Positions 5,054 through 35,500 are shown, counted from the first letter of the stretch. The stretch: 64,000 bases of DNA from Mizuhopecten yessoensis (GCF_002113885.1 NW_018407883.1:125896-189895); one strand, 5' to 3'. The notes: generated by a model from the sequence alone, not told the origin. Numbers and translations: made by a program.

Positions 5054-5183
5054 GTGTAAGGTGCATGGGGCCAGGAATCTGCGCATGCGCACAGAGTTGC
5101 AAATATGGCACGTGCTGGAATGGTCAATGTGAGTGCTGGACAGGTTATACTGGCCATACCTGTTCGCATTACAACCCATTAAC
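5054..5183 (+). CDS. GH gene exon: EGF-like (tenascin-type) cysteine repeats
   Basis: tag|GT...AC|gtaagt; (G)VRCMGPGICACAQSCKYGTCWNGQCECWTGYTGHTCSHYNPL. The CxCxxGYxGxxC EGF signature is present. The exon ends in phase 2, matching the next exon. Missed by the ORF track. Confidence 0.85.
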
Positions 5184-8100
5184 GTAAGTTAGATATCTCT
5201 TGCGTTAACAAATGGAGTCATTCACAATTGAGGACAAATACCGGTAAATAAGAGAGAGTAAATAATCCGTAAAATAATATTTTATACTAGAGTTTCAGTT
5301 GTGATCAGTTGTAATTGTGGAGAAGAGTTCCATTCCAGAAAGTTTATTTGAATGGAGTAGTCTCCCTATTATCTATAAGATAAATACACCAAAGGCAGTT
5401 ATTCTGTTCCCGAATCTCAACATTAATGCAAGTGTAGGCTTCGCAAGGTAAAGGCCTTGAGTTAGACCCCTGCAGTCTTTCTGTTTTCTGTTTCCTATTT
5501 TTTCCCATATTTTCCCTTTTTTATTTTGCATTTTCAAATATTCAAATTCTGAACAACTATCATTCTGTAAAAACGCATGGCAACATGCGATTTTTATGGA
5601 AAGGACTAAAACAAATACTTTTATTCGGAATAGTGACAATATTTGACATGCTTGTACCTTTTACCTTAACAGAGTTTACTTAAGTAAAAGTAAGCCTGTC
5701 TAACACAGTGCCTCACCCAAATCTGCAACAATTCTGTTTATGTAACGATACAGTAACAGACATGGGATGCCTTTCCAGCATTGAATCGTCTTCAGTCTTA
5801 GTTTTTTACTCCCAATGTTTTTTTTTGAGAATGCCAAATTTCTCTTCCGAGCACAGGATGCCTAACAGGGGCGTCAGTGTGGGTATGAACCTCGGCGGCC
5901 TTTCCTACTACTCCAGTGAAGTGAAGTTCGTAGACGTGGCGAAAGAATCCATGGAATGGATAACACAAAGACGAGAGGGCGCACAAGCGCATCAGTGGAA
6001 TACTCAAGAGGAAGCAACAGTTGCCTATGACGACGACGGATATCCCAAACGACTGGAAGGTTTTGTTTGTTTGTTTGTTTGTTTGTTTGTTTTGGGGAGA
6101 CATGCTATAATATAACGCCAATAAAACTGCAGATAGCTTTTGTGAAACCGTGTATCGTTTGGAGATGTCCGTATGTGCTAAGAAGGCATCTCTTTTCCTT
6201 TCGAGACCAAAAAGAATGCAACATTTGTTGTTTGATTTGGCATCAGTTTGCTTATTTTCTATTATTTTGCTTCCTTGAATTCCTGCACAAATATTTGTGT
6301 ACACGTGTGATGTATCCGATTGCTTGCACTGCTACCCAAAACATACATTTGGCTATTTTTCAGTTATGATTTAGTGAGGCATGAAAGTTTATTATCATAC
6401 GTGTCTTGGCTCAAAGCCTGATGTAACAATAATCTTTTAAGATTCCACCTAATGCTCGAAAAAAACATAGCATCTGAAATATCTACCACTGTATGGTGTT
6501 GCCACTATATTACTCTGCAATTACAAATGGCATTCATATTGACTGTAAATACCAAGTACTACGTATTAACATTATCATTACATTAAGTCATGATTGTTAC
6601 GTTGTATACCTCTGATGGTTTATTGGAAATGTCTGTTCTATTCATTGAACAAGTATATACGATGCACATATTAATTTGAAGTAAATCATTTAATGCGGCA
6701 TATTTATAAACACGTGGTTATTTCAGTGATACCATAATACCATAAAAATGGTAAGTATAAGCATAGCAGTGTGTTGATATGGCATTTACAGTCTGTATGA
6801 ATGACAACACTTTGCAGTCAAACAAATCATTATGGGCTAGCGCACGTTATAAGTTTTGCTGTAAAAACTTGTTCGATTTGCTTAGAGTATATATGCAATA
6901 TTAACACAGTTAAACGCTGAATTAAAGCTAACATATTTTTCTCTGTATAGATACGATGATACTGGTGACCTTGATGCTCCGTGGAGGTCATTGGAGTCCC
7001 GGGGGTAACTATACCATACTGTATGACGGAGAGGGAGAACTTGACCTTGGACTCGTTCACGTCACACGTGTCTACGAGGGCAAAGGTAATATTCCTCTAT
7101 GAGCATTACTTTAAGAGATTGCATTCATAGGGCTATGAACGCAATTGGATCAGCGTCATTTCGAAGCTTCTCCTCCCGCCTCGACTAACATGATCCAGTC
7201 CACGGTTTAGGTTGTAATTCAGCACTGAACTGGTTAGAATGGTCGGGATGATATTCCGTAACACCATGAAAACAGCGTTACATGCGTATTGTTACACTTA
7301 ATACTCCAGACAGAGAATTATTAGAATGTGGATTTTTTCTAAAAAGAACTTGGTTCCTTGATCAACCCTGAACCACCTCTTTTCAAAACTGTGTTTTTTC
7401 TGAACATCTGATTTTCTCACTCCATACACCACTATATCTCATACCAAACTGGAGGAACACATTCGTTCTTTAATCATGGGAACTTCCTATTTCAGGAACA
7501 GCGGACGGTGATATACATATATGGTTGTAAAGTTTTTTTGAGCATATTTTGTGAAATATATACGACCTGGCTAAGAAAAAATATACCGAGGGTGAAATCG
7601 TGATGCTGAGTTGGATGCCAAGGTTTCCTAGAAGACTGCTCACCTCTCCTGATCGGCTTGCTTATCTTTTCAAAGGAGGCTAAAGAGCTCATCACGACTG
7701 GAAACAGAATCCTGCCATGTCCTTCATTTTCACTTTAGGATATTATGACGAAGTGTTATCTTCAATTTTTTAACACATATATCCAACGCAATTGTTTAAA
7801 CTTATCTTGACATCATAGACATTACGGGCTCTTCTTCGTCTGTATTCTTTCGCGAAGAGATGGCTTCTGCAAGCGTGATGGTTTTAATGTTACAATCGCT
7901 AATGTCTTCTTTCTCGATATAAGCTTCCCTGCTCCCCCAAATACAGTTCTTATATTTTGCAGTTGATTCATTATACCAGGGCTTGCTCTAAATATAATCA
8001 TTTACTGTTGACGGACAAACATAATATCATAGTTCTCGAGAGATCAAAGTTGATGAAACCGGTCGGCAAGTTTCCTGGACGCGAAATAATCTCATTGGGA

Positions 8101-11100
8101 AATAGCCTATGAATGAAGATGTTTTTTGCACTCATGATATCGCCTTGTGGTTTCGTTGTCACTACCGCGATTCTTACTTGGAGAACGTGACAACTCATAT
8201 ATACATTGTAGGTTTGTTCGATGAGTCTGCATAATCGAACCATTCCGAAACACCTTACCATATTGTTCTTGCATTTTAAAGGTCTGTACATTAATCTATC
8301 TTTTTTATCTCATTTTTATCGGGTTTTTTAAGGTCGAATTTCGGTTTTTCTGATACTTAAGTATCCCCTTAAAACAATTTGGATATATGTTCCATCCTTC
8401 ACTTTTCACAAAACTCGTTTTCGTGTCTGTCTTTGCACACTTATAGTTATATCTACCATTTTGACCTGCATGTCCTTATTGTGGCAGTTTCCTATTTTAT
8501 ATATGAAATATTCACACATTACGTGATATATGACATCATCTTACAGGACGCATCATCGTCAATATGGATCCTGGATCAGGTGGTATCGAACTGAAGCTCA
8601 TGCGCATAAACCCACAAAACCATATTCGGAACATCCGAGTCATACTTCCGGGTTTTGAGGATAGGCATGCGCACTTCCCTTACAATCCATTGTTCTTAGA
8701 GACAATCACACGTTACTCTGAGTTCCGATATATGGACTTCATGCATACAAACGCACACCGGGTAAGTATTTTGAGTCAAATATCTCCATGTTATGAATGG
8801 TTTTTCTAAAATAACAATAATCTTGAGTTCTTGAGAAGTATATCATTTTTTAGCATATCGTTATATATAATTTTCATCATGGTTCGTGTAAAATACTTTT
8901 TTTGCAAAAAATCTTTATTTTTCTCGAGGGGTAATTGCAGTTATGTACATGTACGTTATTGATATGGTGTCACGGTTACAGCCCGAACCTACAACATGGG
9001 CAAGTCGCAGGAAGCAGACTTTTTACACCCAGACCGGAAGCTACGGTGCCGCCATTGAAAACATGATACTGTTGAGTAACATGATGGGCGCCAACCCTTG
9101 GTTTAATATCCCTCACGCAGCAGACGACGACTTCATCAGACAGTTTGCGGCTTTGGTCAAATCATCCCTGCGTCCAGACCTTAAAGTTTGTTCATTTCCA
9201 TTCTATTTAAGTTTTTAAAAGTGGCAACATATACGCAGACATCGATATTACTTACCCATAAGAGTACTGTTGATCTTGTGAGCAGAAACATTATGATGTA
9301 TGCAACATTATCAGTTAATTAAAATTGACCGATGATTAAGGACAACAACACAATCTGATTGTGTTCTGCGTTTGTTCGACACAATTATTTCAAAGTACAT
9401 GAATAAGTTTACCCAATCATAAATCGACATTTACTGAGTTATAATGATATATAACATTTGATATAGCGCACTATTTAGCTAATATAAGCCACTCTAAAGC
9501 GCTTCAGAGTCCACAGATTTACAATTAAAACAATTAGCATATACATTAATCGATACAATTTTGAGGAATTCGCAGGAGCTGCCTTAACAGGCGCTAACTA
9601 CTAGTCCTATGCCACCTGGCTAATATCTCCCTATGTGGGTATGCCTGCGTGGTTGCTGGAGATGTAATGTAATTGATGTAAGTTGTGTGGTTTATGTTGT
9701 AGGTTTAACTCTTTTAGGTTTATAGTTTTTAGTTTATTATTAGCATCATATTTGTTGATATCCTATTTGAAGGTATATCTTGAGTATTCCAACGAAGTGT
9801 GGAATGGAATATTCCGCCAGACAGCATATACAGTAGAAAAGGGGACACAACTCGGTCTAGACAGCCATGGTAACAGGGCTGGGATGAAATATTATAATCA
9901 AAGGTCATCGGAGGTCATGCAGATATTCCAGGCGGTAAGAAGTCGGCGTCCTAGTGTCAGACTATTTATGTAAAACATTTTTTTGTTTTGTTTTTTTTTG
10001 TCATGCAAACAGTTGTCGATTTTATTTAAACTCTTTATTTCTTCTTAATCGGGCATCTTGTTAAGAATCTGTTTCATCTTTTTTTGTTTTATATCTTTTA
10101 CACCTGTCAAACCTTGAGTGTGGTATTAACGGAGAGTTAATAGCTTTTGCTATATAATAAAAAGGAAAATTACCATTTTATCATGCTGATCAGAAAAATA
10201 ATTTGAAGGATAGCATCACGGTAACTAAAGTGTAAACGAAATCCCGTAACACTTGATCAAAACGAGATTTAAACGTGATTTAAACATCCTAAACATGACA
10301 TACATCCACAGCGGTACACATCTCATATTACGGTTTGTTTTTTGTTTGCCTCTTCTATATCGAATTAGTTTCCTGTGTATTTATTAATGAACAGGTATTT
10401 GGTAATCATGGCAACGATAGACTCATTCCCGTGTGGGCGTGGCAGACTGGTTACCAGGACTACTACCGACAAGCACTTGATGACCTCGGTAACCGGACAC
10501 GTGACTTTAAGGCTCTGTCAATCACAGGGTATTTTTCATGCGACGGCGCTGCTTCAAAACATGTTCGTCATTTTTTTGCGTAATATCTTGACTAATATTT
10601 TATAATCATCTATGATATTTGATTAGTAGGTCTACATAACCAATTATATTATTTTCACGGGTATTTGTCAAACAAACAAAAAAAGAACCAATAATACTTA
10701 AATGTTAACGAAACCATAATTCGAACTCCACATCGATAAAAATCATTTATTAGATTTTACTAGTGTGGTTTTTGTATTGAAGCAAAATTTAAAAAAAAGT
10801 CCGATACACATATTATTAGTATAATTTCCAATAATTCAGAACGATCTTACAGAATGCAATCAACATATTAAAAAATCGATAGTATCTTTAAGGAAATTAG
10901 AAAAAGTCGATAAACTATTCCACAAATGTAGATGAAGCCCTAAGGATGAGGATGTGTCCCTCCTGTATTTGTTTTAGAAAGCTGAGTTACCAAACATGAC
11001 AATGAGCGAGATAAGTGACCTTTGTGCCTTGGGACTTTCCACCCAGGAAAACCTGTACCAACACTACATGGATGTCGCGAAGGTTAAACAAAGTTAATGT

Positions 11101-14100
11101 TGATTATCAGAACAATTTCATCTATATGACCTTTTCCTGTGAGGATGGTTTAACACAATGTTATAGTAATATTTTATCCTGTCCATCAGCACCACATTTT
11201 CAAGCATCATTTATGCTAGTTACCTAAAGTAGATACTCTATATTTCTCAAAAGTATTGTTTACCCTTTGTATCATCATAAGAACAGTGGTGAGTAAACTT
11301 TAGTTTCTAACATGGTGATCTGGAGTTCACACAGAAAAATAACACCGATGCTCTAGCTTGTGTTTTGGACTTTATAGCCTTATGCTCTGCAATTGAAAAA
11401 AGAAAAGCTGCACATGAGTTGACTACAGGAAACATTGTTAATCATAAAACAGTCTTCTTTTGGTCAGTATATTTTTTTTGAGTGCATATATTTTATGCTT
11501 TTATATTTTAAGAAGATCATATCGATTCATCAGGCAGTCTTGAACTGTAGGTTTAGATTTATTATTATTTATTTTGCAACCTGCAAAAAGTCAATGCTTT
11601 TAATGCAATTTCAATATTATTTCATTTCCTCACGCAGCGCACAGTTAATTCGGGCAATAGACTGCCCTCTTGTCAAACAAATGTCTGTTGCCCTTAAACC
11701 TGTTAATGTTTTCGTCTTGTTTGAGTTAGGACCTTGTCGCTTCTGATGCATTATATAAGTATACAGTTTGCAATAATTATAATTTTATAAACATCTTCTT
11801 CAGAACCACAGTTTAGCGCTGGTGATGTATGAGGGAGGACCAGCCGTGATGGAACCTGGGGCCATATCACATGGAACATCAAATGACGCTGTCACAACCA
11901 AGGCCATCGCGTTTAATTCCGACCCTCATATTAAAGTTAACGTGATGGCGATTCTGAACGCCTGGAAGAGGATCGTGACAGATGCCCCGGGAAATCAGGC
12001 TTCTGGTTAGTCTTTAAAATAACAAGAAGCACAAAGGCCTTAGCGGTCACCTGAGTTGTCACCTGAGTTATATCATAGGTACTGGTAGCTTTATTTTATT
12101 GTTTAGATGTGATGTGGAAATCAACATGTAAACTAAGTGAAATATAATACTTGTCATGTCATCAAAGGATAAGAATTTGAAAATATTGGTAAATGTTCCC
12201 TTTGGGGCCCCGCCCTAGCCCCTGGGGATCGCGCAGGAATCCTAATTTTACAATGTAATACCCTCATTCACCAAAGGTAATTCTGACTAAGTTTGAGTAA
12301 CTTTCTGCTGAAAATGGATAAAATATACCCAGAAGTGTTATTTCCCTATATAAACTATAGTAAACTTTACCCCCTCCCCAAGGGAGAACGGATTTAAATA
12401 AAGCCTATGATGATTTTTCTTTATATGCACTGAAATTGAATGTAGTACCTCTGAGTCATGGGAGAAGATTTTTATAATATTGGTTAATTTTCCCTTTGGA
12501 GCCCCGCCCTGGCCCCTAGGGTTGGGGTAGGAATCTCAATTTTACAATTTGAAACCATATTCCTCCAAGGATAATTCTCACCAAGTAAAAAAAAAATCCC
12601 TACAGAAAGTTGTTAAAATATACCCAAAAGTGTTTTTTCCCTATATAAACTATAGTAAACTTTACCCCCTCCCCAAGGGAGAACGGATAGATCGGGGGTC
12701 CTGAAATTTACAATTTAAATAAAGTCCCTGATGATCTTTCTTTTTATGCACTAAAATTGAATGTAGTACCTCTGAGTCTGGAGATTTTTGAAATATTGGT
12801 TAATTTTCCCTTTGGGGCCCCGCCCTGACCCCAGGGGTTGGGGTAGGAATCCCAATTTTACAATTTTGTAGCCTCATCTACCAAGGATGATTCTGGCTAA
12901 GTTTGAAAAAAAATCCATCCACTGGTTCTTGAGAAGAAGTTGAAAATGTAAAACGTTTACGCACGACAACGGACGACGACAGACGGAAAGCGATTAGAAT
13001 AGGTCACTTGAGCAAAGCTCAGGTGACCTAAAAATAAAAGCAAATCTCTATACATGATTGCAAAAGGAACATCTGTTACACAGGCAGTCTTGTGTGGTTG
13101 AATGGTTTGGCTTAAATATCAATAATAATGCTAACCCTAATCCCCAACATTATAGTTACAATAATACAGATAACCAATCGTATCTTACCGTTCTACACCA
13201 TCAGAACTAGGAACTTCCAGCTTTCACAATTTGTTTTGCATTTCCATAATTTTACATTTATTTACGCATGTAAATGTGTAGTTTAGACGTACAAGGAAAT
13301 AAAGGAAAGTGAGCACAACCCATTGATTATCGTGGACGGGGTGGGGTGTAAGGTAAATACAAATGTTATGATGAAACTAATATAGAATCGTTCGCTTTGC
13401 GATTAGACGCCTTGCATATTGCGGTGTTGTTTGAATAACGATAACACCGAAATGATTAATTCACACCGAAAGCGCGTGATTGTAATCATGTAACATAGCT
13501 TACTAATATCAAAACTTTCGAAAATGTATTTGATTCGCTTTAGGCGGCCTATTCAACTACTTTTCTTCGGCCGGTTTTCCAAGCAAATACGGAAGCTGGG
13601 GGATGCTACAATACACTGGGGAGGACCTGCACAGCGTCCCCAAATATATGGCTGTTCACGAGTTCATCACCAAACAACTCGGCCATGACGTTCTCGGAAA
13701 CAAATGTTCTTTCGTAAAAAGTGGGAACCTCGCGTTCGGATGCTTCAAACCAAAAAATGGACATAGCTGGAAATGTGGCAAATCTTACAATCATGGATCA
13801 GCCTGGGAGGTATACGAGCTTAAATACTTCAAAAATGTCGTAAGATACAGTTTAGAGTTAAAGAAGGAACACTTGCGAATCTGACAAATGAACGAGGGAT
13901 ACGCGACTTTTGATGTTCCTGTAAATAATTATAAACCCTCGCCAATGACCCACTACGAGAACGTCCCTGAAAATTACTACTCACAAAACAACTTGAACAT
14001 TTCCTTTTTAATGATCTTTTTCAACATTAATCGACTTTGATATGCACATCTCGAGGTTTTGTATAGGTTCAATTTTGTTTAAGCAATGGTTTATTCAATA

Positions 14101-15105
14101 ATCGTGCATGGTTATAACATACATGTAATCTCAGGGGGAGTGGAACACAAGCTTAGAGCTTATATCAATTCCTGTTTTATTGGGTTGGTTAGCAACCTAG
14201 AAAGATTCATCTATTATACGTCTCTGCCTCAGCGAAGCAAATGTTCTGTGTATCGAAATACTTATAATCACCGTGGAGAACATGAATCACGCCGACCATT
14301 ATCATGTATCTATACTCTACTCATTCTCTCAATTTGTTTTAAAAATTGTCGCGTATATACATATTGATCAAAAACTAAAGGGAATATATCAGTAATTACG
14401 TTTGAGATCAATCTTAAATAAAAAATCAAAACAAAAAAATCACCTCGAACGACTCATTTAAACCTAGTAAAATGTTCGACTTCCTTTGTACGTTCCAGTA
14501 CTTGCCTGACCTACCCGGACAAGGTATCCTAAGTATTCTTGACGGATACGATTCCATTACTCACACACTGTTTGTTCGGACAGTTGATGCGGTGGGTGTG
14601 AACCAATATCACGTGACCAATACCAACCATTTCAATTGGACCACGTAAGCTTATTCACACTCCAATACAAAAGATTTCGTTTTCCATTCCCTTAAATAAC
14701 TGTTCATTATAATGAAGCATCGGTATCCCAGTTATCATTATCAACAATGTGTCGTCAACTAACTGTTTAAGTGTGCAAGTGGGACGTTTTTAATTTATGT
14801 TCAGACATAATTCTGAATCATCATTTCTGTTTTTGAAATTAAATTTGAAGTCAATTCATTGTTCCATTTACTCAAATTTATACATATCTATCCGACTGAC
14901 TTTCTAAAATCTCACTTATTCTTCAAATTATTCTGTTTTATTGCTCTTATCTTGTTGATTTAGTACAGACAGTTGGGACTATCATTCAAAGTCTGCCTCT
15001 CGTCATGTGACTCGAAGTCTCGCGGCGGGAGATTATCACCATCTAGCTACAGCCCACGCTGACTGTGTATATTATGCACACGCACCTGCGCCTGTCTTGG
15101 GTTGA
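5054..15105 (+). CDS. Spliced gene (5'-incomplete): EGF-like repeats + putative clan GH-A glycoside hydrolase (bacterial 'cellulose-binding domain protein'-like) + C-terminal Asp-box-like region, about 691 aa in window
   Basis: 12 exons: 5054-5183, 5857-6059, 6951-7085, 8547-8761, 8982-9185, 9773-9934, 10395-10562, 10978-11082, 11804-12005, 13544-13809, 14499-14644, 14964-15105. All introns are GT-AG and the phases chain without a stop (2078 nt, ending TGA 15103-15105, AATAAA at 15113). The family assignment is from motif recognition, not a search. Confidence 0.88.
5857..6059 (+). CDS. GH gene exon
   Basis: cag|G ATG CCT...GAA G|gttttg; MPNRGVSVGMNLGGLSYYSSEVKFVDVAKESMEWITQ...DDDGYPKRLE. Confidence 0.88.
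6060..6092. repeat. (GTTT)n microsatellite starting at the intron donor GT
   Basis: gttttgtttgtttgtttg... directly after exon 5857-6059. Confidence 0.85.
6951..7085 (+). CDS. GH gene exon
   Basis: tatag|AT...AAA G|gtaat; DTMILVTLMLRGGHWSPGGNYTILYDGEGELDLGLVHVTRVYEGK. Not in the ORF track. Confidence 0.88.
8547..8761 (+). CDS. GH gene exon
   Basis: tacag|GA...CGG|gtaagt; GRIIVNMDPGSGGIELKLMRINPQNHIRNIRVILPGFED...NPLFLETITRYSEFRYMDFMHTNAHR. Confidence 0.9.
8982..9185 (+). CDS. GH gene exon
   Basis: tacag|CCC...AAA|gtttgt; PEPTTWASRRK...GAAIENMILLSNMMGANPWFNIPHAADDDFIRQFAALVKSSLRPDLK. Confidence 0.9.
9773..9934 (+). CDS. GH gene exon containing the putative acid/base Asn-Glu (EYSNEVWN)
   Basis: gaag|GTA...GCG|gtaaga; VYLEYSNEVWNGIFRQTAY...QRSSEVMQIFQA; Glu codon at 9794-9796. 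Confidence 0.9.
10395..10562 (+). CDS. GH gene exon
   Basis: acag|GTA...CAT|gttcgt; VFGNHGNDRLIPVWAWQTGY...KALSITGYFSCDGAASKH. Confidence 0.85.
10978..11082 (+). CDS. GH gene exon
   Basis: ttttag|AAA...AAG|gttaaa; KAELPNMTMSEISDLCALGLSTQENLYQHYMDVAK (phase 0-0). Confidence 0.82.
11804..12005 (+). CDS. GH gene exon containing the putative nucleophile Glu (YEGG)
   Basis: ttcag|AAC...TCT G|gttagt; NHSLALVMYEGGPAVMEPG...AFNSDPHIKVNVMAILNAWKRIV...; Glu codon at 11831-11833. Confidence 0.88.
12021..13034 (-). mobile_element. Non-autonomous Helentron/HINE-like element with internal tandem units, in an intron of the GH gene
   Basis: The minus strand starts TTTTTAGGTCACCTGAGCTTTGCTCAAGTGACCTA (subterminal hairpin), followed by a GTC-rich microsatellite-like stretch. 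Three internal units of about 300 bp follow (CCCTTTGGGGCCCCGCCCT-like at about 12199, 12493 and 12809). The 3' end is CTCAGGTGACCGCTAAGGCCTTTGTGCTTCTTGTT, inserted in a T-run. Confidence 0.8.
13544..13809 (+). CDS. GH gene exon (end of catalytic barrel, SKYGSWG; start of C-terminal domain)
   Basis: tttag|GC...GAG|gtatac; GGLFNYFSSAGFPSKYGSWGMLQYTGEDLHSVPKYMAV...CGKSYNHGSAWE. Confidence 0.88.
14499..14644 (+). CDS. GH gene exon
   Basis: ttccag|TAC...AC|gtaagc; YLPDLPGQGILSILDGYDSITHTLFVRTVDAVGVNQYHVTNTNHFNWT. Confidence 0.8.
14964..15105 (+). CDS. GH gene terminal exon
   Basis: tttag|T ACA...GGT TGA; TDSWDYHSKSASRHVTRSLAAGDYHHLATAHADCVYYAHAPAPVLG*. Confidence 0.8.
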
Positions 15106-32500: not shown

Positions 32501-35500
32501 GGTAACGCTCACTTTTGCTCTCTGCACCCCTGGAACATGTCATAACAAAATTGAAAGCACAAAGATAGCTGTTTGATTGGTCTCAGGTAAAAACAAGGTT
32601 ACCGCGAGCGGTACATAATACGCCCGTCACACATTGAATGAGCAGTTGTTTGTATGATTGAAATATATGAAGTATTTGTGAGTAATTGATATTAAAAGAG
32701 AAATCATTCAACAAAACTGGTAGATCAATGAGTGCAATACAACATCATGGAACGCATGCATCGCATTAATGAAACCAAGGGAAATAACTCCACAAATTAT
32801 GGTCGGATAATGGCGGTTATCGANNNNNNNNNNNNNNNNNNNNNNNNNNNNNNNNNNNNNNNNNNNNNNNNNNNNNNNNNNNNNNNNNNNNNNNNNNNNN
32901 NNNNNNNNNNNNNNNNNNNNNNNNNNNNNNNNNNNNNNNNNNNNNNNNNNNNNNNNNNNNNNNNNNNNNNNNNNNNNNNNNNNNNNNNNNNNNNNNNNNN
33001 NNNNNNNNNNNNNNNNNNNNNNNNNNNNNNNNNNNNNNNNNNNNNNNNNNNNNNNNNNNNNNNNNNNNNNNNNNNNNNNNNNNNNNNNNNNNNNNNNNNN
33101 NNNNNNNNNNNNNNNNNNNNNNNNNNNNNNNNNNNNNNNNNNNNNNNNNNNNNNNNNNNNNNNNNNNNNNNNNNNNNNNNNNNNNNNNNNNNNNNNNNNN
33201 NNNNNNNNNNNNNNNNNNNNNNNNNNNNNNNNNNNNNNNNNNNNNNNNNNNNNNNNNNNNNNNNNNNNNNNNNNNNNNNNNNNNNNNNNNNNNNNNNNNN
33301 NNNNNNNNNNNNNNNNNNNNNNNNNNNNNNNNNNNNNNNNNNNNNNNNNNNNNNNNNNNNNNNNNNNNNNNNNNNNNNNNNNNNNNNNNNNNNNNNNNNN
33401 NNNNNNNNNNNNNNNNNNNNNNNNNNNNNNNNNNNNNNNNNNNNNNNNNNNNNNNNNNNNNNNNNNNNNNNNNNNNNNNNNNNNNNNNNNNNNNNNNNNN
33501 NNNNNNNNNNNNNNNNNNNNNNNNNNNNNNNNNNNNNNNNNNNNNNNNNNNNNNNNNNNNNNNNNNNNNNNNNNNNNNNNNNNNNNNNNNNNNNNNNNNN
33601 NNNNNNNNNNNNNNNNNNNNNNNNNNNNNNNNNNNNNNNNNNNNNNNNNNNNNNNNNNNNNNNNNNNNNNNNNNNNNNNNNNNNNNNNNNNNNNNNNNNN
33701 NNNNNNNNNNNNNNNNNNNNNNNNNNNNNNNNNNNNNNNNNNNNNNNNNNNNNNNNNNNNNNNNNNNNNNNNNNNNNNNNNNNNNNNNNNNNNNNNNNNN
33801 NNNNCACGTGATAACATAATACGTCCCCGTCTTCGACGGGCGTATAAAAACTGACCAATCGCTAGGCTGATAAATGTCCTTTGAAGATTAAAAAGGAGAG
33901 ACGCCCGACTTCAAAGCATGTCAATTTTTACCGTTATGTAAGGATCAAACTAGTCTTCTTGTCTCATCAACAAGGCGGTGCACAATGAGCCTTCAATTTT
34001 GCTATGACATATTCCAGGGGTATAGAGAGCGAAAGTTAGCATGACCACTGGATATCGCGGATGAGGTCAGGTTGATTTTGTCATTTCTCAGGCTGTTATG
34101 TAATGTAATGCCACCATCATATAAATTGTAGTCATGCCTAAAAAACTGATGCAATCAAATACTTATACAATGTAGCTGTTTTGGTTAAAAATTCAATCCA
34201 TCACATTTGTATCATGATGATTTTTTTGTTTGCCTCACAATTGTGCTGTAAAATTCTAATTTTGTATGCGGAATAGGTGTTTGTCTCTCTATCTGAAGTT
34301 TTCATCTTTCTTTTTTTTTTTTTTTTTTTTTTTGTCCATTTATTTCCAATCTTCGTTTACTAACTTTTCACCACCACCCTCATTGTATCTATCTCACTTT
34401 GGTCTATTTCAACAGCTACACTTTGTTAATTCATAAGTCGCCTGTGAGTAAATGTGTAACCCCAGGTCCAGTGTCTGCAAGCATAACTTTATCAACAAAC
34501 AGATCAAAAATATTGTTTTTAAATTTCTGCCTTTTTATGAACTTTCATTTGTTTTTTGTCCCAGGATATTTCATACATTTCATAAATTACTGGAAAATTT
34601 GAACAGACTACTTATTCCGTCTTTGCGTATTGCAGAGCTATCTTCTCTTGACAGCCGGTATTGATTGTTACGTCATTTGTTTTTGAGAGGAACGTCATCA
34701 ATTTTTGAGAAAACGACGTAATTTTCTCACACAAACAAATGACGTAACAATCAATACCTGCTCTCAAGAGAAGATAACTCTGCAATACGCAAAGACGGAA
34801 TAGGCTTACAGACAAATGTCCCCTGGAAATCTGTACATTATAACTTAATATTGTACAACTAAACATCAATAAACAGGCTCAAAAATGCAATTGCCCAAAA
34901 TTAATATTCCATGCAAAGGTCAATGTGACAGGGTATTTTGTTCAGACTATTGCTGGTTCCAGCTTAAACAATATAATTAAATGATTACCAATTTTTTATT
35001 TACTATTGTTAATATTTATAAGTAATTAGTATCAGTACATTCCATTCCTTTTATTATAACCTCTTTAAATCAAACATTACACATATCACATGATTTAAGT
35101 GCTTTAGTATTGAAATTTGGATAAATTCCCATATACACTTTCTATATTTCACGTCCATTTTCCTTTATTGATAGGTTTTTGATATTTTCTAACATGCAAA
35201 CATTTCTAACCAACATCATGTAAGGATGTGTCCAGGTTAAAACACTTCTTAGCTATTAGTAAACTCCCTCTTCAGAAAGTGATTTTTAAATTGAAATATT
35301 TTCATGAAGGTTTAAATCCTTGTAATTATAAAATTGTCATTACCAGATATTTTTTGTGTTATTCAAATTGAAATTTGGCTCTTTTTCAACTTGTGGGGTT
35401 TGATCACTATTATCCATATGTTGTCAAGCGTTTTAGAGTAATTTTACAAATTATAAAGGACGCTATATAAATGTTGTATATTATTATTTATTATTAAGAC

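Follow-up and report, generated by a model that had tools for sequence, protein, structure and literature searches.

An intron-rich scallop gene for a predicted clan GH-A-type glycosidase in what appears to be a eukaryotic EGF-barrel cassette

In the genome of the scallop Mizuhopecten yessoensis, a stretch of 64,000 nucleotides (GCF_002113885.1 NW_018407883.1:125896-189895, referred to below as the window) contains, at positions 5054-15105, most of a gene whose product combines EGF-like modules with a large barrel domain. After molluscs, the next matches of this barrel are bacterial. How such a gene has come to be encoded in an animal, and what its product does, are the questions raised by this locus. 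The gene is LOC110457373, on the + strand, and its product is a protein of 784 amino acids (aa), database protein P0163. It is annotated but unnamed. It belongs to a known fold clan as a family-level variant, and its taxonomic distribution is unusual. The explanation that we consider probable is that it encodes a secreted enzyme of the clan GH-A type (GH, glycoside hydrolase), carried in a eukaryotic cassette of EGF modules and barrel and not acquired by molluscs specifically from bacteria.

Exact-match spliced mapping has shown that positions 5054-15105 encode residues 93-784 of P0163 exactly, in 12 exons separated by introns that all have GT..AG ends, and the open frame closes with the stop codon at 15103-15105 that ends the last exon. 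The original prediction, made from the sequence of the window, had assembled 12 GT-AG exons into a frame of about 691 aa; the exons and the frame stand for residues 93-784, but the model is incomplete at its 5' end, as the full protein has 784 aa. The window holds the 3' 90% of the gene, which starts about 3.8 kb before it. Upstream exons encode aa 9-66 (G000:C4556:122050-122223) and aa 65-95 (124770-124862 of the same contig, on which the window starts at 125896). Truncated models of 688 aa starting with MGPGIC in Pecten and Ylistrum correspond to the frame of about 691 aa. All 13 motifs listed earlier lie on the + strand in their places, from GMNLGGLSYYSSEVKFVD at 5882-5935 to PKY at 13639-13647, and the gene is single-copy in the scallop, since all 14 matches in a search of the genome with P0163 are its own exons.

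P0163 is composed of a hydrophobic leader, an array of four teneurin-type EGF modules (aa ~18-136), a barrel (aa 137-~655) and a C-terminal beta module (aa ~656-784). By inspection only, the leader MIDVRIVSILLTLIGWSLA looks like a signal peptide. The exons in the window, all placed by the mapping to P0163, and the junctions found in RNA are as follows.

5054..5183, + strand: exon for aa 93-136, the fourth and last EGF-like module; start phase 1, end phase 2
5857..6059, + strand: exon for aa 136-204, with barrel strand 1 (GMNLGG) and the first part of an inserted beta-sandwich, from motifs and model
6951..7085, + strand: exon for aa 204-249, inserted beta-sandwich (YTILYDGEG), from motifs and model
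8547..8761, + strand: exon for aa 249-320, in which the beta-sandwich ends (IRNIRVILPG) and the FRYMDFMHTN strand carries invariant Arg309 and Asn317; 3' junction in RNA contigs
8982..9185, + strand: exon for aa 321-388, containing the IENMILLSN helix and the PWFNIPH strand, with the nearly invariant His365; junctions in RNA contigs
9773..9934, + strand: exon for aa 389-442, strand 4 and VYLEYSNEVWN, with the predicted acid/base Glu396 (9794-9796) after Asn395; junctions in RNA contigs
10395..10562, + strand: exon for aa 443-498, which carries barrel strands 5 and 6 and the invariant Tyr488; junctions in RNA contigs
10978..11082, + strand: exon for aa 499-533, helical segment from strand 6 to strand 7; junctions in RNA contigs
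11804..12005, + strand: exon for aa 534-601, strand 7 (LVMYEGGP) with the predicted nucleophile Glu543 (11831-11833); junctions in RNA contigs
13544..13809, + strand: exon for aa 601-689, strand 8 (SKYGSWG), barrel end (PKY) and first part of the C-terminal module found in molluscs only; 5' junction in RNA contigs
14499..14644, + strand: exon for aa 690-738, C-terminal beta module
14964..15105, + strand: last coding exon, aa 738-784 and stop
8761/8982, 9185/9773, 9934/10395, 10562/10978, 11082/11804 and 12005/13544, + strand: junctions present in transcript contigs X1 and X7

The contigs X1 (2437 nt) and X7 (2332 nt) come from different studies and contain the six junctions with no mismatch and with GT..AG ends. 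In addition, between 14 and 32% of the words sampled from 8500-14000 are present in each of 14 sequencing runs from 8 studies, nine of which reach at least 21%; since exons make up 24% of this region, the nine runs hold about what the spliced exons alone would give. The earlier description of the locus as an intron-rich animal gene is thus borne out and extended to an expressed one, and contamination is excluded: the gene has introns and transcripts, and its orthologues occur in many mollusc assemblies.

The relatives of the barrel have been identified by a HMMER search with the exon-5 piece (8970-9182) among 1.84 billion representatives, which gave 2059 clusters at E<=1e-3. Besides bacterial proteins these comprise proteins of 1.3-3.7 thousand aa with three barrel copies, the named ones being encoded in Mesostigma, Chlamydomonas, Volvox, Pleodorina, Astrephomene, Tetrabaena, Guillardia, Mallomonas, Paulinella, a bicosoecid and the eukaryote assembly GCA_003568945.1. 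The sources include green algae, cryptophytes, stramenopiles and Rhizaria as well as another protist, and the giant proteins are taken as secreted; the one from Tetrabaena bears the name 'Tenascin-X'. The layout with an EGF array before a barrel has been found in more than 10 protist lineages. In the giant proteins a four-module EGF array of the EGF_TEN type directly precedes the third barrel and is collinear with scallop aa 18-136; the exon at 5054..5183, which has weak matches to the Pfam families EGF_2 and EGF_TEN, aligns with the last module before copy 3. The scallop array shares 43% identity over 122 aa with that of Mesostigma (E 8e-28) and 46% over 108 aa with that of the protist protein P0036 (E 2e-27), while no other EGF match in the scallop genome exceeds 25 bits. 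Because the array is collinear with the protist arrays and unlike other scallop EGFs, the EGF modules came with the barrel and are not generic metazoan additions. The giant proteins also share with the scallop protein the catalytic motifs and a place in one clade against the bacteria. They differ in having three barrels, together with TSP1, PA14 or REJ domains, and their barrels are only about 33% identical to that of the scallop, which has a single barrel corresponding to the copy-3 cassette.

The exons of three protist genes have been mapped exactly for a comparison of introns. A phase-0 intron between Lys388 and Val389 of the scallop protein, just before VYLEYSNEVWN and at the junction K/VY(L/V)E, occurs in the same alignment column and phase in copy 3 of P0036, copy 2 of the Chlamydomonas protein and copy 2 of the Guillardia protein, the gene for the last having five introns in all. 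A second scallop intron (at aa 321) lies one residue from an intron of P0036 in a gapped region and has not been counted as shared. From these sequence comparisons, the EGF array and barrel of the scallop are taken to be a eukaryotic cassette, the same as the third repeat of the giant protist proteins.

The barrels have been further compared in a tree of 58 sequences and 517 columns, inferred by IQ-TREE under LG+C20+F+G4 by PMSF. The tree is unrooted and the supports given are ultrafast bootstrap/SH-aLRT. Further molluscs, further multi-barrel proteins, Volvox, Tetrabaena and about 24 bacterial representatives were left out of the 58-row set.

Bacteria against molluscs with all protist copies: 100/98, in 200/200 bootstrap trees
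Molluscs: 100/100, with the chiton basal
Gastropods: 99/96
Protist copy 2: 100/99
Protist copy 3: 90/76
Molluscs with copy 3: 78/41

The molluscs therefore group with the protist copies and are not nested among bacteria, contrary to the phylogeny expected under the bacterial transfer that had been proposed. A FastTree tree of 236 barrels, which is not relied on here, gave the same mollusc clade and neighbourhood. The eukaryotic group itself attaches within the bacterial radiation of the unrooted tree, with 100/94 beside one bacterial sequence and inside a 96/95 cluster. A single old bacterial origin is hence likely for the eukaryotic family as judged from the tree; it would have involved one transfer from a bacterium to a eukaryote, far earlier than molluscs.

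All named animal matches among the matches listed belong to molluscs, namely bivalves, gastropods and a chiton, with identities of 43-89% when the query is the oyster protein P0151 and of 44-85% for the scallop barrel. The mollusc gene tree follows the species tree, and the gene is read from it as present in the mollusc ancestor and as vertically inherited thereafter. Family expansion is observed in gastropods, as against the single scallop copy. Proteins of Batillaria (P0001, P0306, P0343) contain a tandem pair of mollusc-type barrels, and at least 5 Littorina paralogues (P0169, P0172, P0175, P0178, P0179) lie on one chromosome-scale contig.

As to the route of acquisition, we slightly favour a transfer from a microbial eukaryote into molluscs, at little better than even chances. 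A more specific version is that a stem mollusc took up an intron-bearing cassette (with at least one intron), cut from the giant three-barrel protein of an alga or protist, and so founded an unclassified GH-A family with molluscs as its only animal members; this we put forward tentatively, as a serious possibility that falls somewhat short of an even chance. If a protist-to-mollusc transfer of the cassette were true, it would be a rare and well-marked case of gene transfer from a eukaryote to an animal, along with a new family of carbohydrate-active enzymes with thousands of uncharacterised members in bacteria, viral contigs and protists. The cassette and intron in common make the route testable, and the gene is a candidate for one that sets molluscs apart from other animals.

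Vertical descent of an ancient eukaryotic EGF-barrel gene that came down to a single cassette on the line to animals or to molluscs, with its loss from all the other animals sampled, is the alternative that survives best. It would agree with the occurrence of the cassette in several eukaryotic supergroups, with the intron position in common with protists and with the species-tree topology within molluscs. It is nevertheless unlikely in our judgement, since no named match from any other animal, choanoflagellate, fungus or amoebozoan is found among the matches listed, so that very many independent losses would be needed, and since the stem branch of the molluscs is long (0.67).

The second part of the explanation that we favour, an enzyme of the clan GH-A type, is based on the predicted structure of the barrel and on its conserved residues. 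An AlphaFold2 model built on an alignment of 81 homologues (pLDDT 92.7, pTM 0.93) has a (beta/alpha)8 barrel of eight strand-helix units, a beta-sandwich inserted between barrel strands 1 and 2 (model residues ~70-152) and the C-terminal beta module. The best Foldseek matches are to GH51, GH10, GH79, GH39, GH53 and GH158 (E ~1e-6 to 1e-4), in a list that is nearly all clan GH-A. By VIA-align the best 50 entries all have a GH-A-type barrel (Z 17.6-23.4) and comprise 48 clan GH-A glycosidases and 2 Klotho proteins, which are GH1-like. The highest is the GH51 structure 1pz2 (Z 23.4, root-mean-square deviation 3.5, 303 residues aligned, 8% identity), followed by GH79 (5bwi, Z 21.2), GH39 (1w91, Z 20.6), GH10 (Z 20.0) and GH5 (Z 19.7); the list is flat and no single GH family stands out. 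In the alignment of the 81 sequences from molluscs and bacteria, an Arg, an Asn-Glu pair, a Tyr, a Glu and a Trp are invariant, and in the model they lie on strands 2, 4, 6, 7 and 8.

Arg309: strand 2, invariant
His365: after strand 3, nearly invariant
Asn395-Glu396 (model 266-267): directly after strand 4 (model 260-264), invariant
Tyr488: strand 6, invariant
Glu543 (model 414): strand 7 (model 409-417), invariant
Trp: around strand 8, invariant

The catalytic motifs are kept in most aligned protist copies too. The set of Arg, Asn-Glu, Tyr, Glu and Trp is the canonical active site of clan GH-A, and pseudo-enzymes usually lose such residues. The model thus supports a barrel of clan GH-A type with the layout of acid/base and nucleophile intact, in agreement with what had been proposed from the motifs, including the positions of the two Glu codons. 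It is the GH-A barrel fold together with the invariant Asn395-Glu396 and Glu543 that supports the enzyme reading.

The barrel resembles those of GH51 (alpha-L-arabinofuranosidase), GH79 (heparanase, beta-glucuronidase), GH39 (beta-xylosidase, PslG), GH10 and GH5 in the Asn-Glu after strand 4 and the Glu on strand 7 (Z 19-23), and the alignments with GH79 structures reach into part of the scallop C-terminal beta region. It differs from them in an identity of 8-13% only and in the beta-sandwich inserted between strands 1 and 2, which is particular to this barrel family. Sequence profiles do not place it in GH51, GH79 or GH39, there being no Pfam match and only the above identity in structural alignments. 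As had been noticed, the central 520 aa or so carry no family assignment. Searches of Pfam and NCBIfam with exon pieces gave weak EGF and chance matches only, full-length homologues have no match over the barrel in Pfam, NCBIfam or PHROGs, and searches of PDB chains by sequence, with one exon and with the 81-sequence profile, gave only chance matches. Searching the literature by locus name, for the scallop gene and for six of its orthologues, gave no paper that names any of them, and we found no described GH family to which the barrel could be fitted.

We infer that the product is secreted and catalytic, and a retaining glycosidase acting on an extracellular complex glycan of diet, biofilm, mucus or matrix is, from the model, the probable identity. 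Glu396, after Asn395 at the end of strand 4, would serve as the acid/base, with Glu543 at the end of strand 7 in the role of the nucleophile; retaining hydrolysis of a glycosidic bond in such a glycan would be the most likely mechanism, and the EGF array and C-terminal module may serve anchoring or targeting. Conservation of the C-terminal ~130 aa, four Cys among them, is limited to molluscs. This module (window 13700-15102) is modelled with a pLDDT of 85 and resembles about two blades of a beta-propeller; taken alone, its best matches are to beta-propeller blades (Z 7.4) and to the two-blade fucose lectins RSL and BambL (Z 6.6-6.9), which are below significance.

A protein that keeps the GH-like fold as a non-catalytic, glycan-binding or structural component of the matrix is improbable. 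The EGF array, the possibly lectin-like C-terminal module, the UniRef name 'Tenascin-X' and the lack of any known activity in the family would suit such a role; on the other side stand the Asn-Glu/Glu pair and the Arg, Tyr and Trp, invariant from molluscs to bacteria, with the motifs retained in most protist copies. The name itself is an annotation artefact of the EGF repeats. P0163 shares with Tenascin-X EGF-like repeats only, and in whole mollusc orthologues and window exon pieces Pfam finds EGF-type matches only, with no FN3 or fibrinogen domain.

The bacterial relatives are also in favour of a secreted enzyme. The search has confirmed the proposed homology of the barrel to a bacterial family. 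The nearest ESM Atlas clusters carry the name 'cellulose-binding (domain) protein'; their barrels match the mollusc barrels with E ~1e-100 and 33-38.5% identity over ~500 aa. Such proteins, of ~500 aa, are encoded in Planctomycetota, Verrucomicrobiota, Cyanobacteria, Armatimonadota, Proteobacteria and others, and at least 592 bacterial loci of many phyla have been found in one-genome-per-species contigs, with identities to the scallop of at most 38%. They have in common with the scallop protein the whole barrel with its inserted beta-sandwich, all motifs and the putative catalytic residues, with a TM-score of 0.88-0.92 between predicted structures. They lack the EGF array, the mollusc C-terminal module and the introns, are on the opposite side of the 100/98 split, and many are fused to dockerin, CBM9, NPCBM, PA14, RTX repeats or T9SS tails.

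The neighbourhoods of the bacterial genes are heterogeneous. A locus of Sedimentisphaerales has the order GH78 - homologue - oxidoreductase - beta-helix/CBM6 - GH97 - GH5, and in another two sulfatases, a GH39 and a GH43 are beside the homologue. In two exopolysaccharide loci the stop codon of a GT4 gene overlaps the start of the homologue (L005:8001-9632 and L098:9001-10590), near genes for the synthesis of 3'-phosphoadenosine 5'-phosphosulfate. Both of these loci also contain a flippase-like gene, an ATP-sulfurylase/APS-kinase and a CysQ-like phosphatase; a Wzy-like polymerase (a weak Pfam match) is found in L005 only and dTDP-sugar (dTDP-rhamnose) genes in L098 only. The gene content of the two suggests that the homologue there may be a processing glycosidase for a sulfated exopolysaccharide. 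Two further bacterial loci have nothing telling in their neighbourhood. Glycosyltransferases, sugar-nucleotide enzymes and sulfatases are modestly over-represented among 80 genes that flank bacterial homologues, but no partner is constant. The fusions and neighbourhoods point to a putative secreted carbohydrate-active enzyme, and the theme of rhamnose and sulfate across the neighbourhoods is only a lead. The barrel family is without an anchor in Pfam, NCBIfam or solved structures, yet it comprises more than 2000 representative clusters from bacteria, viral contigs, algae, protists and molluscs, so that identification of the substrate would name a large block of 'hypothetical' and 'cellulose-binding' proteins, many of them in loci for polysaccharide use or exopolysaccharides.

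For all the size of this bacterial family and the highest raw barrel identity being bacterial, a direct transfer of the barrel from a bacterium to molluscs followed by gain of introns and metazoan EGF modules, as the original prediction had it, is largely refuted and in our estimate very improbable, given a cassette common to protists with collinear EGF arrays (E ~1e-27) that have no close counterpart among other scallop EGFs, at least one intron in common with protist genes, and the 100/98 split recovered in 200/200 bootstrap trees. The locus is a caution for studies of animal evolution, as its best match is bacterial, yet its multi-domain cassette and an intron are common to algae and protists.

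Several points weigh against a secreted GH-A-type enzyme in a eukaryotic EGF-barrel cassette, the reading preferred here. The raw identity of the scallop barrel is slightly higher with bacteria (36-38.5%) than with protist copies (~33%), so that its grouping with protists is carried by the model-based tree and the EGF array. The place of the molluscs beside copy 3 or outside the protist duplication is not resolved by the barrels (a protist-only clade has a p of 0.52 in the AU, approximately unbiased, test), so that it is the EGF array, not the barrel, that assigns the mollusc gene to copy 3. The intron in common is at a proto-splice site, AAG/GT (AAA/GT in the scallop), where parallel gain is possible. 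Absence from other animals has been judged among the matches listed and by a word-indexed search. On the side of function, the fold and the conserved residues are the whole of the case for catalysis, the placement of Glu396 and Glu543 is read from strand assignment in the model, and we know of no assayed or solved enzyme of this barrel family. Finally, two raw RNA runs of 2026 (X19 and X24) contain no exon reads; the expression of LOC110457373 is real, yet not ubiquitous.

Relatives of the barrel have also been found in 61 viral contigs of IMG/VR (L099-L159), with 23-35% identity, one contig of 285 kb having two copies (L124 and L140). In the ESM Atlas one cluster, with 91 members, is labelled half viral, and a tblastn search of deposited phage genomes gave no match. 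A role of the barrel as a depolymerase in phages is possible.

Two intronic regions of the scallop gene, 9420-9787 and 11996-13099, are covered at very high depth by all four RNA runs, and many variant letters and loose ends are seen there. These regions are expressed repeats, probably derived from transposons, read from many other copies and outside the LOC110457373 transcript. Elsewhere in the window, positions 32824-33804 are a run of 981 N. The first 880 positions of the window are occupied by a 44-bp minisatellite consisting of repeated copies of the coding piece for aa 84-93 of P0163, matched by tblastn at 37-66, 301-330, 389-418, 477-506, 565-594 and 741-770. It looks like an amplified exon end sitting within an intron, the true exon for aa 65-95 being about 1 kb before the window.

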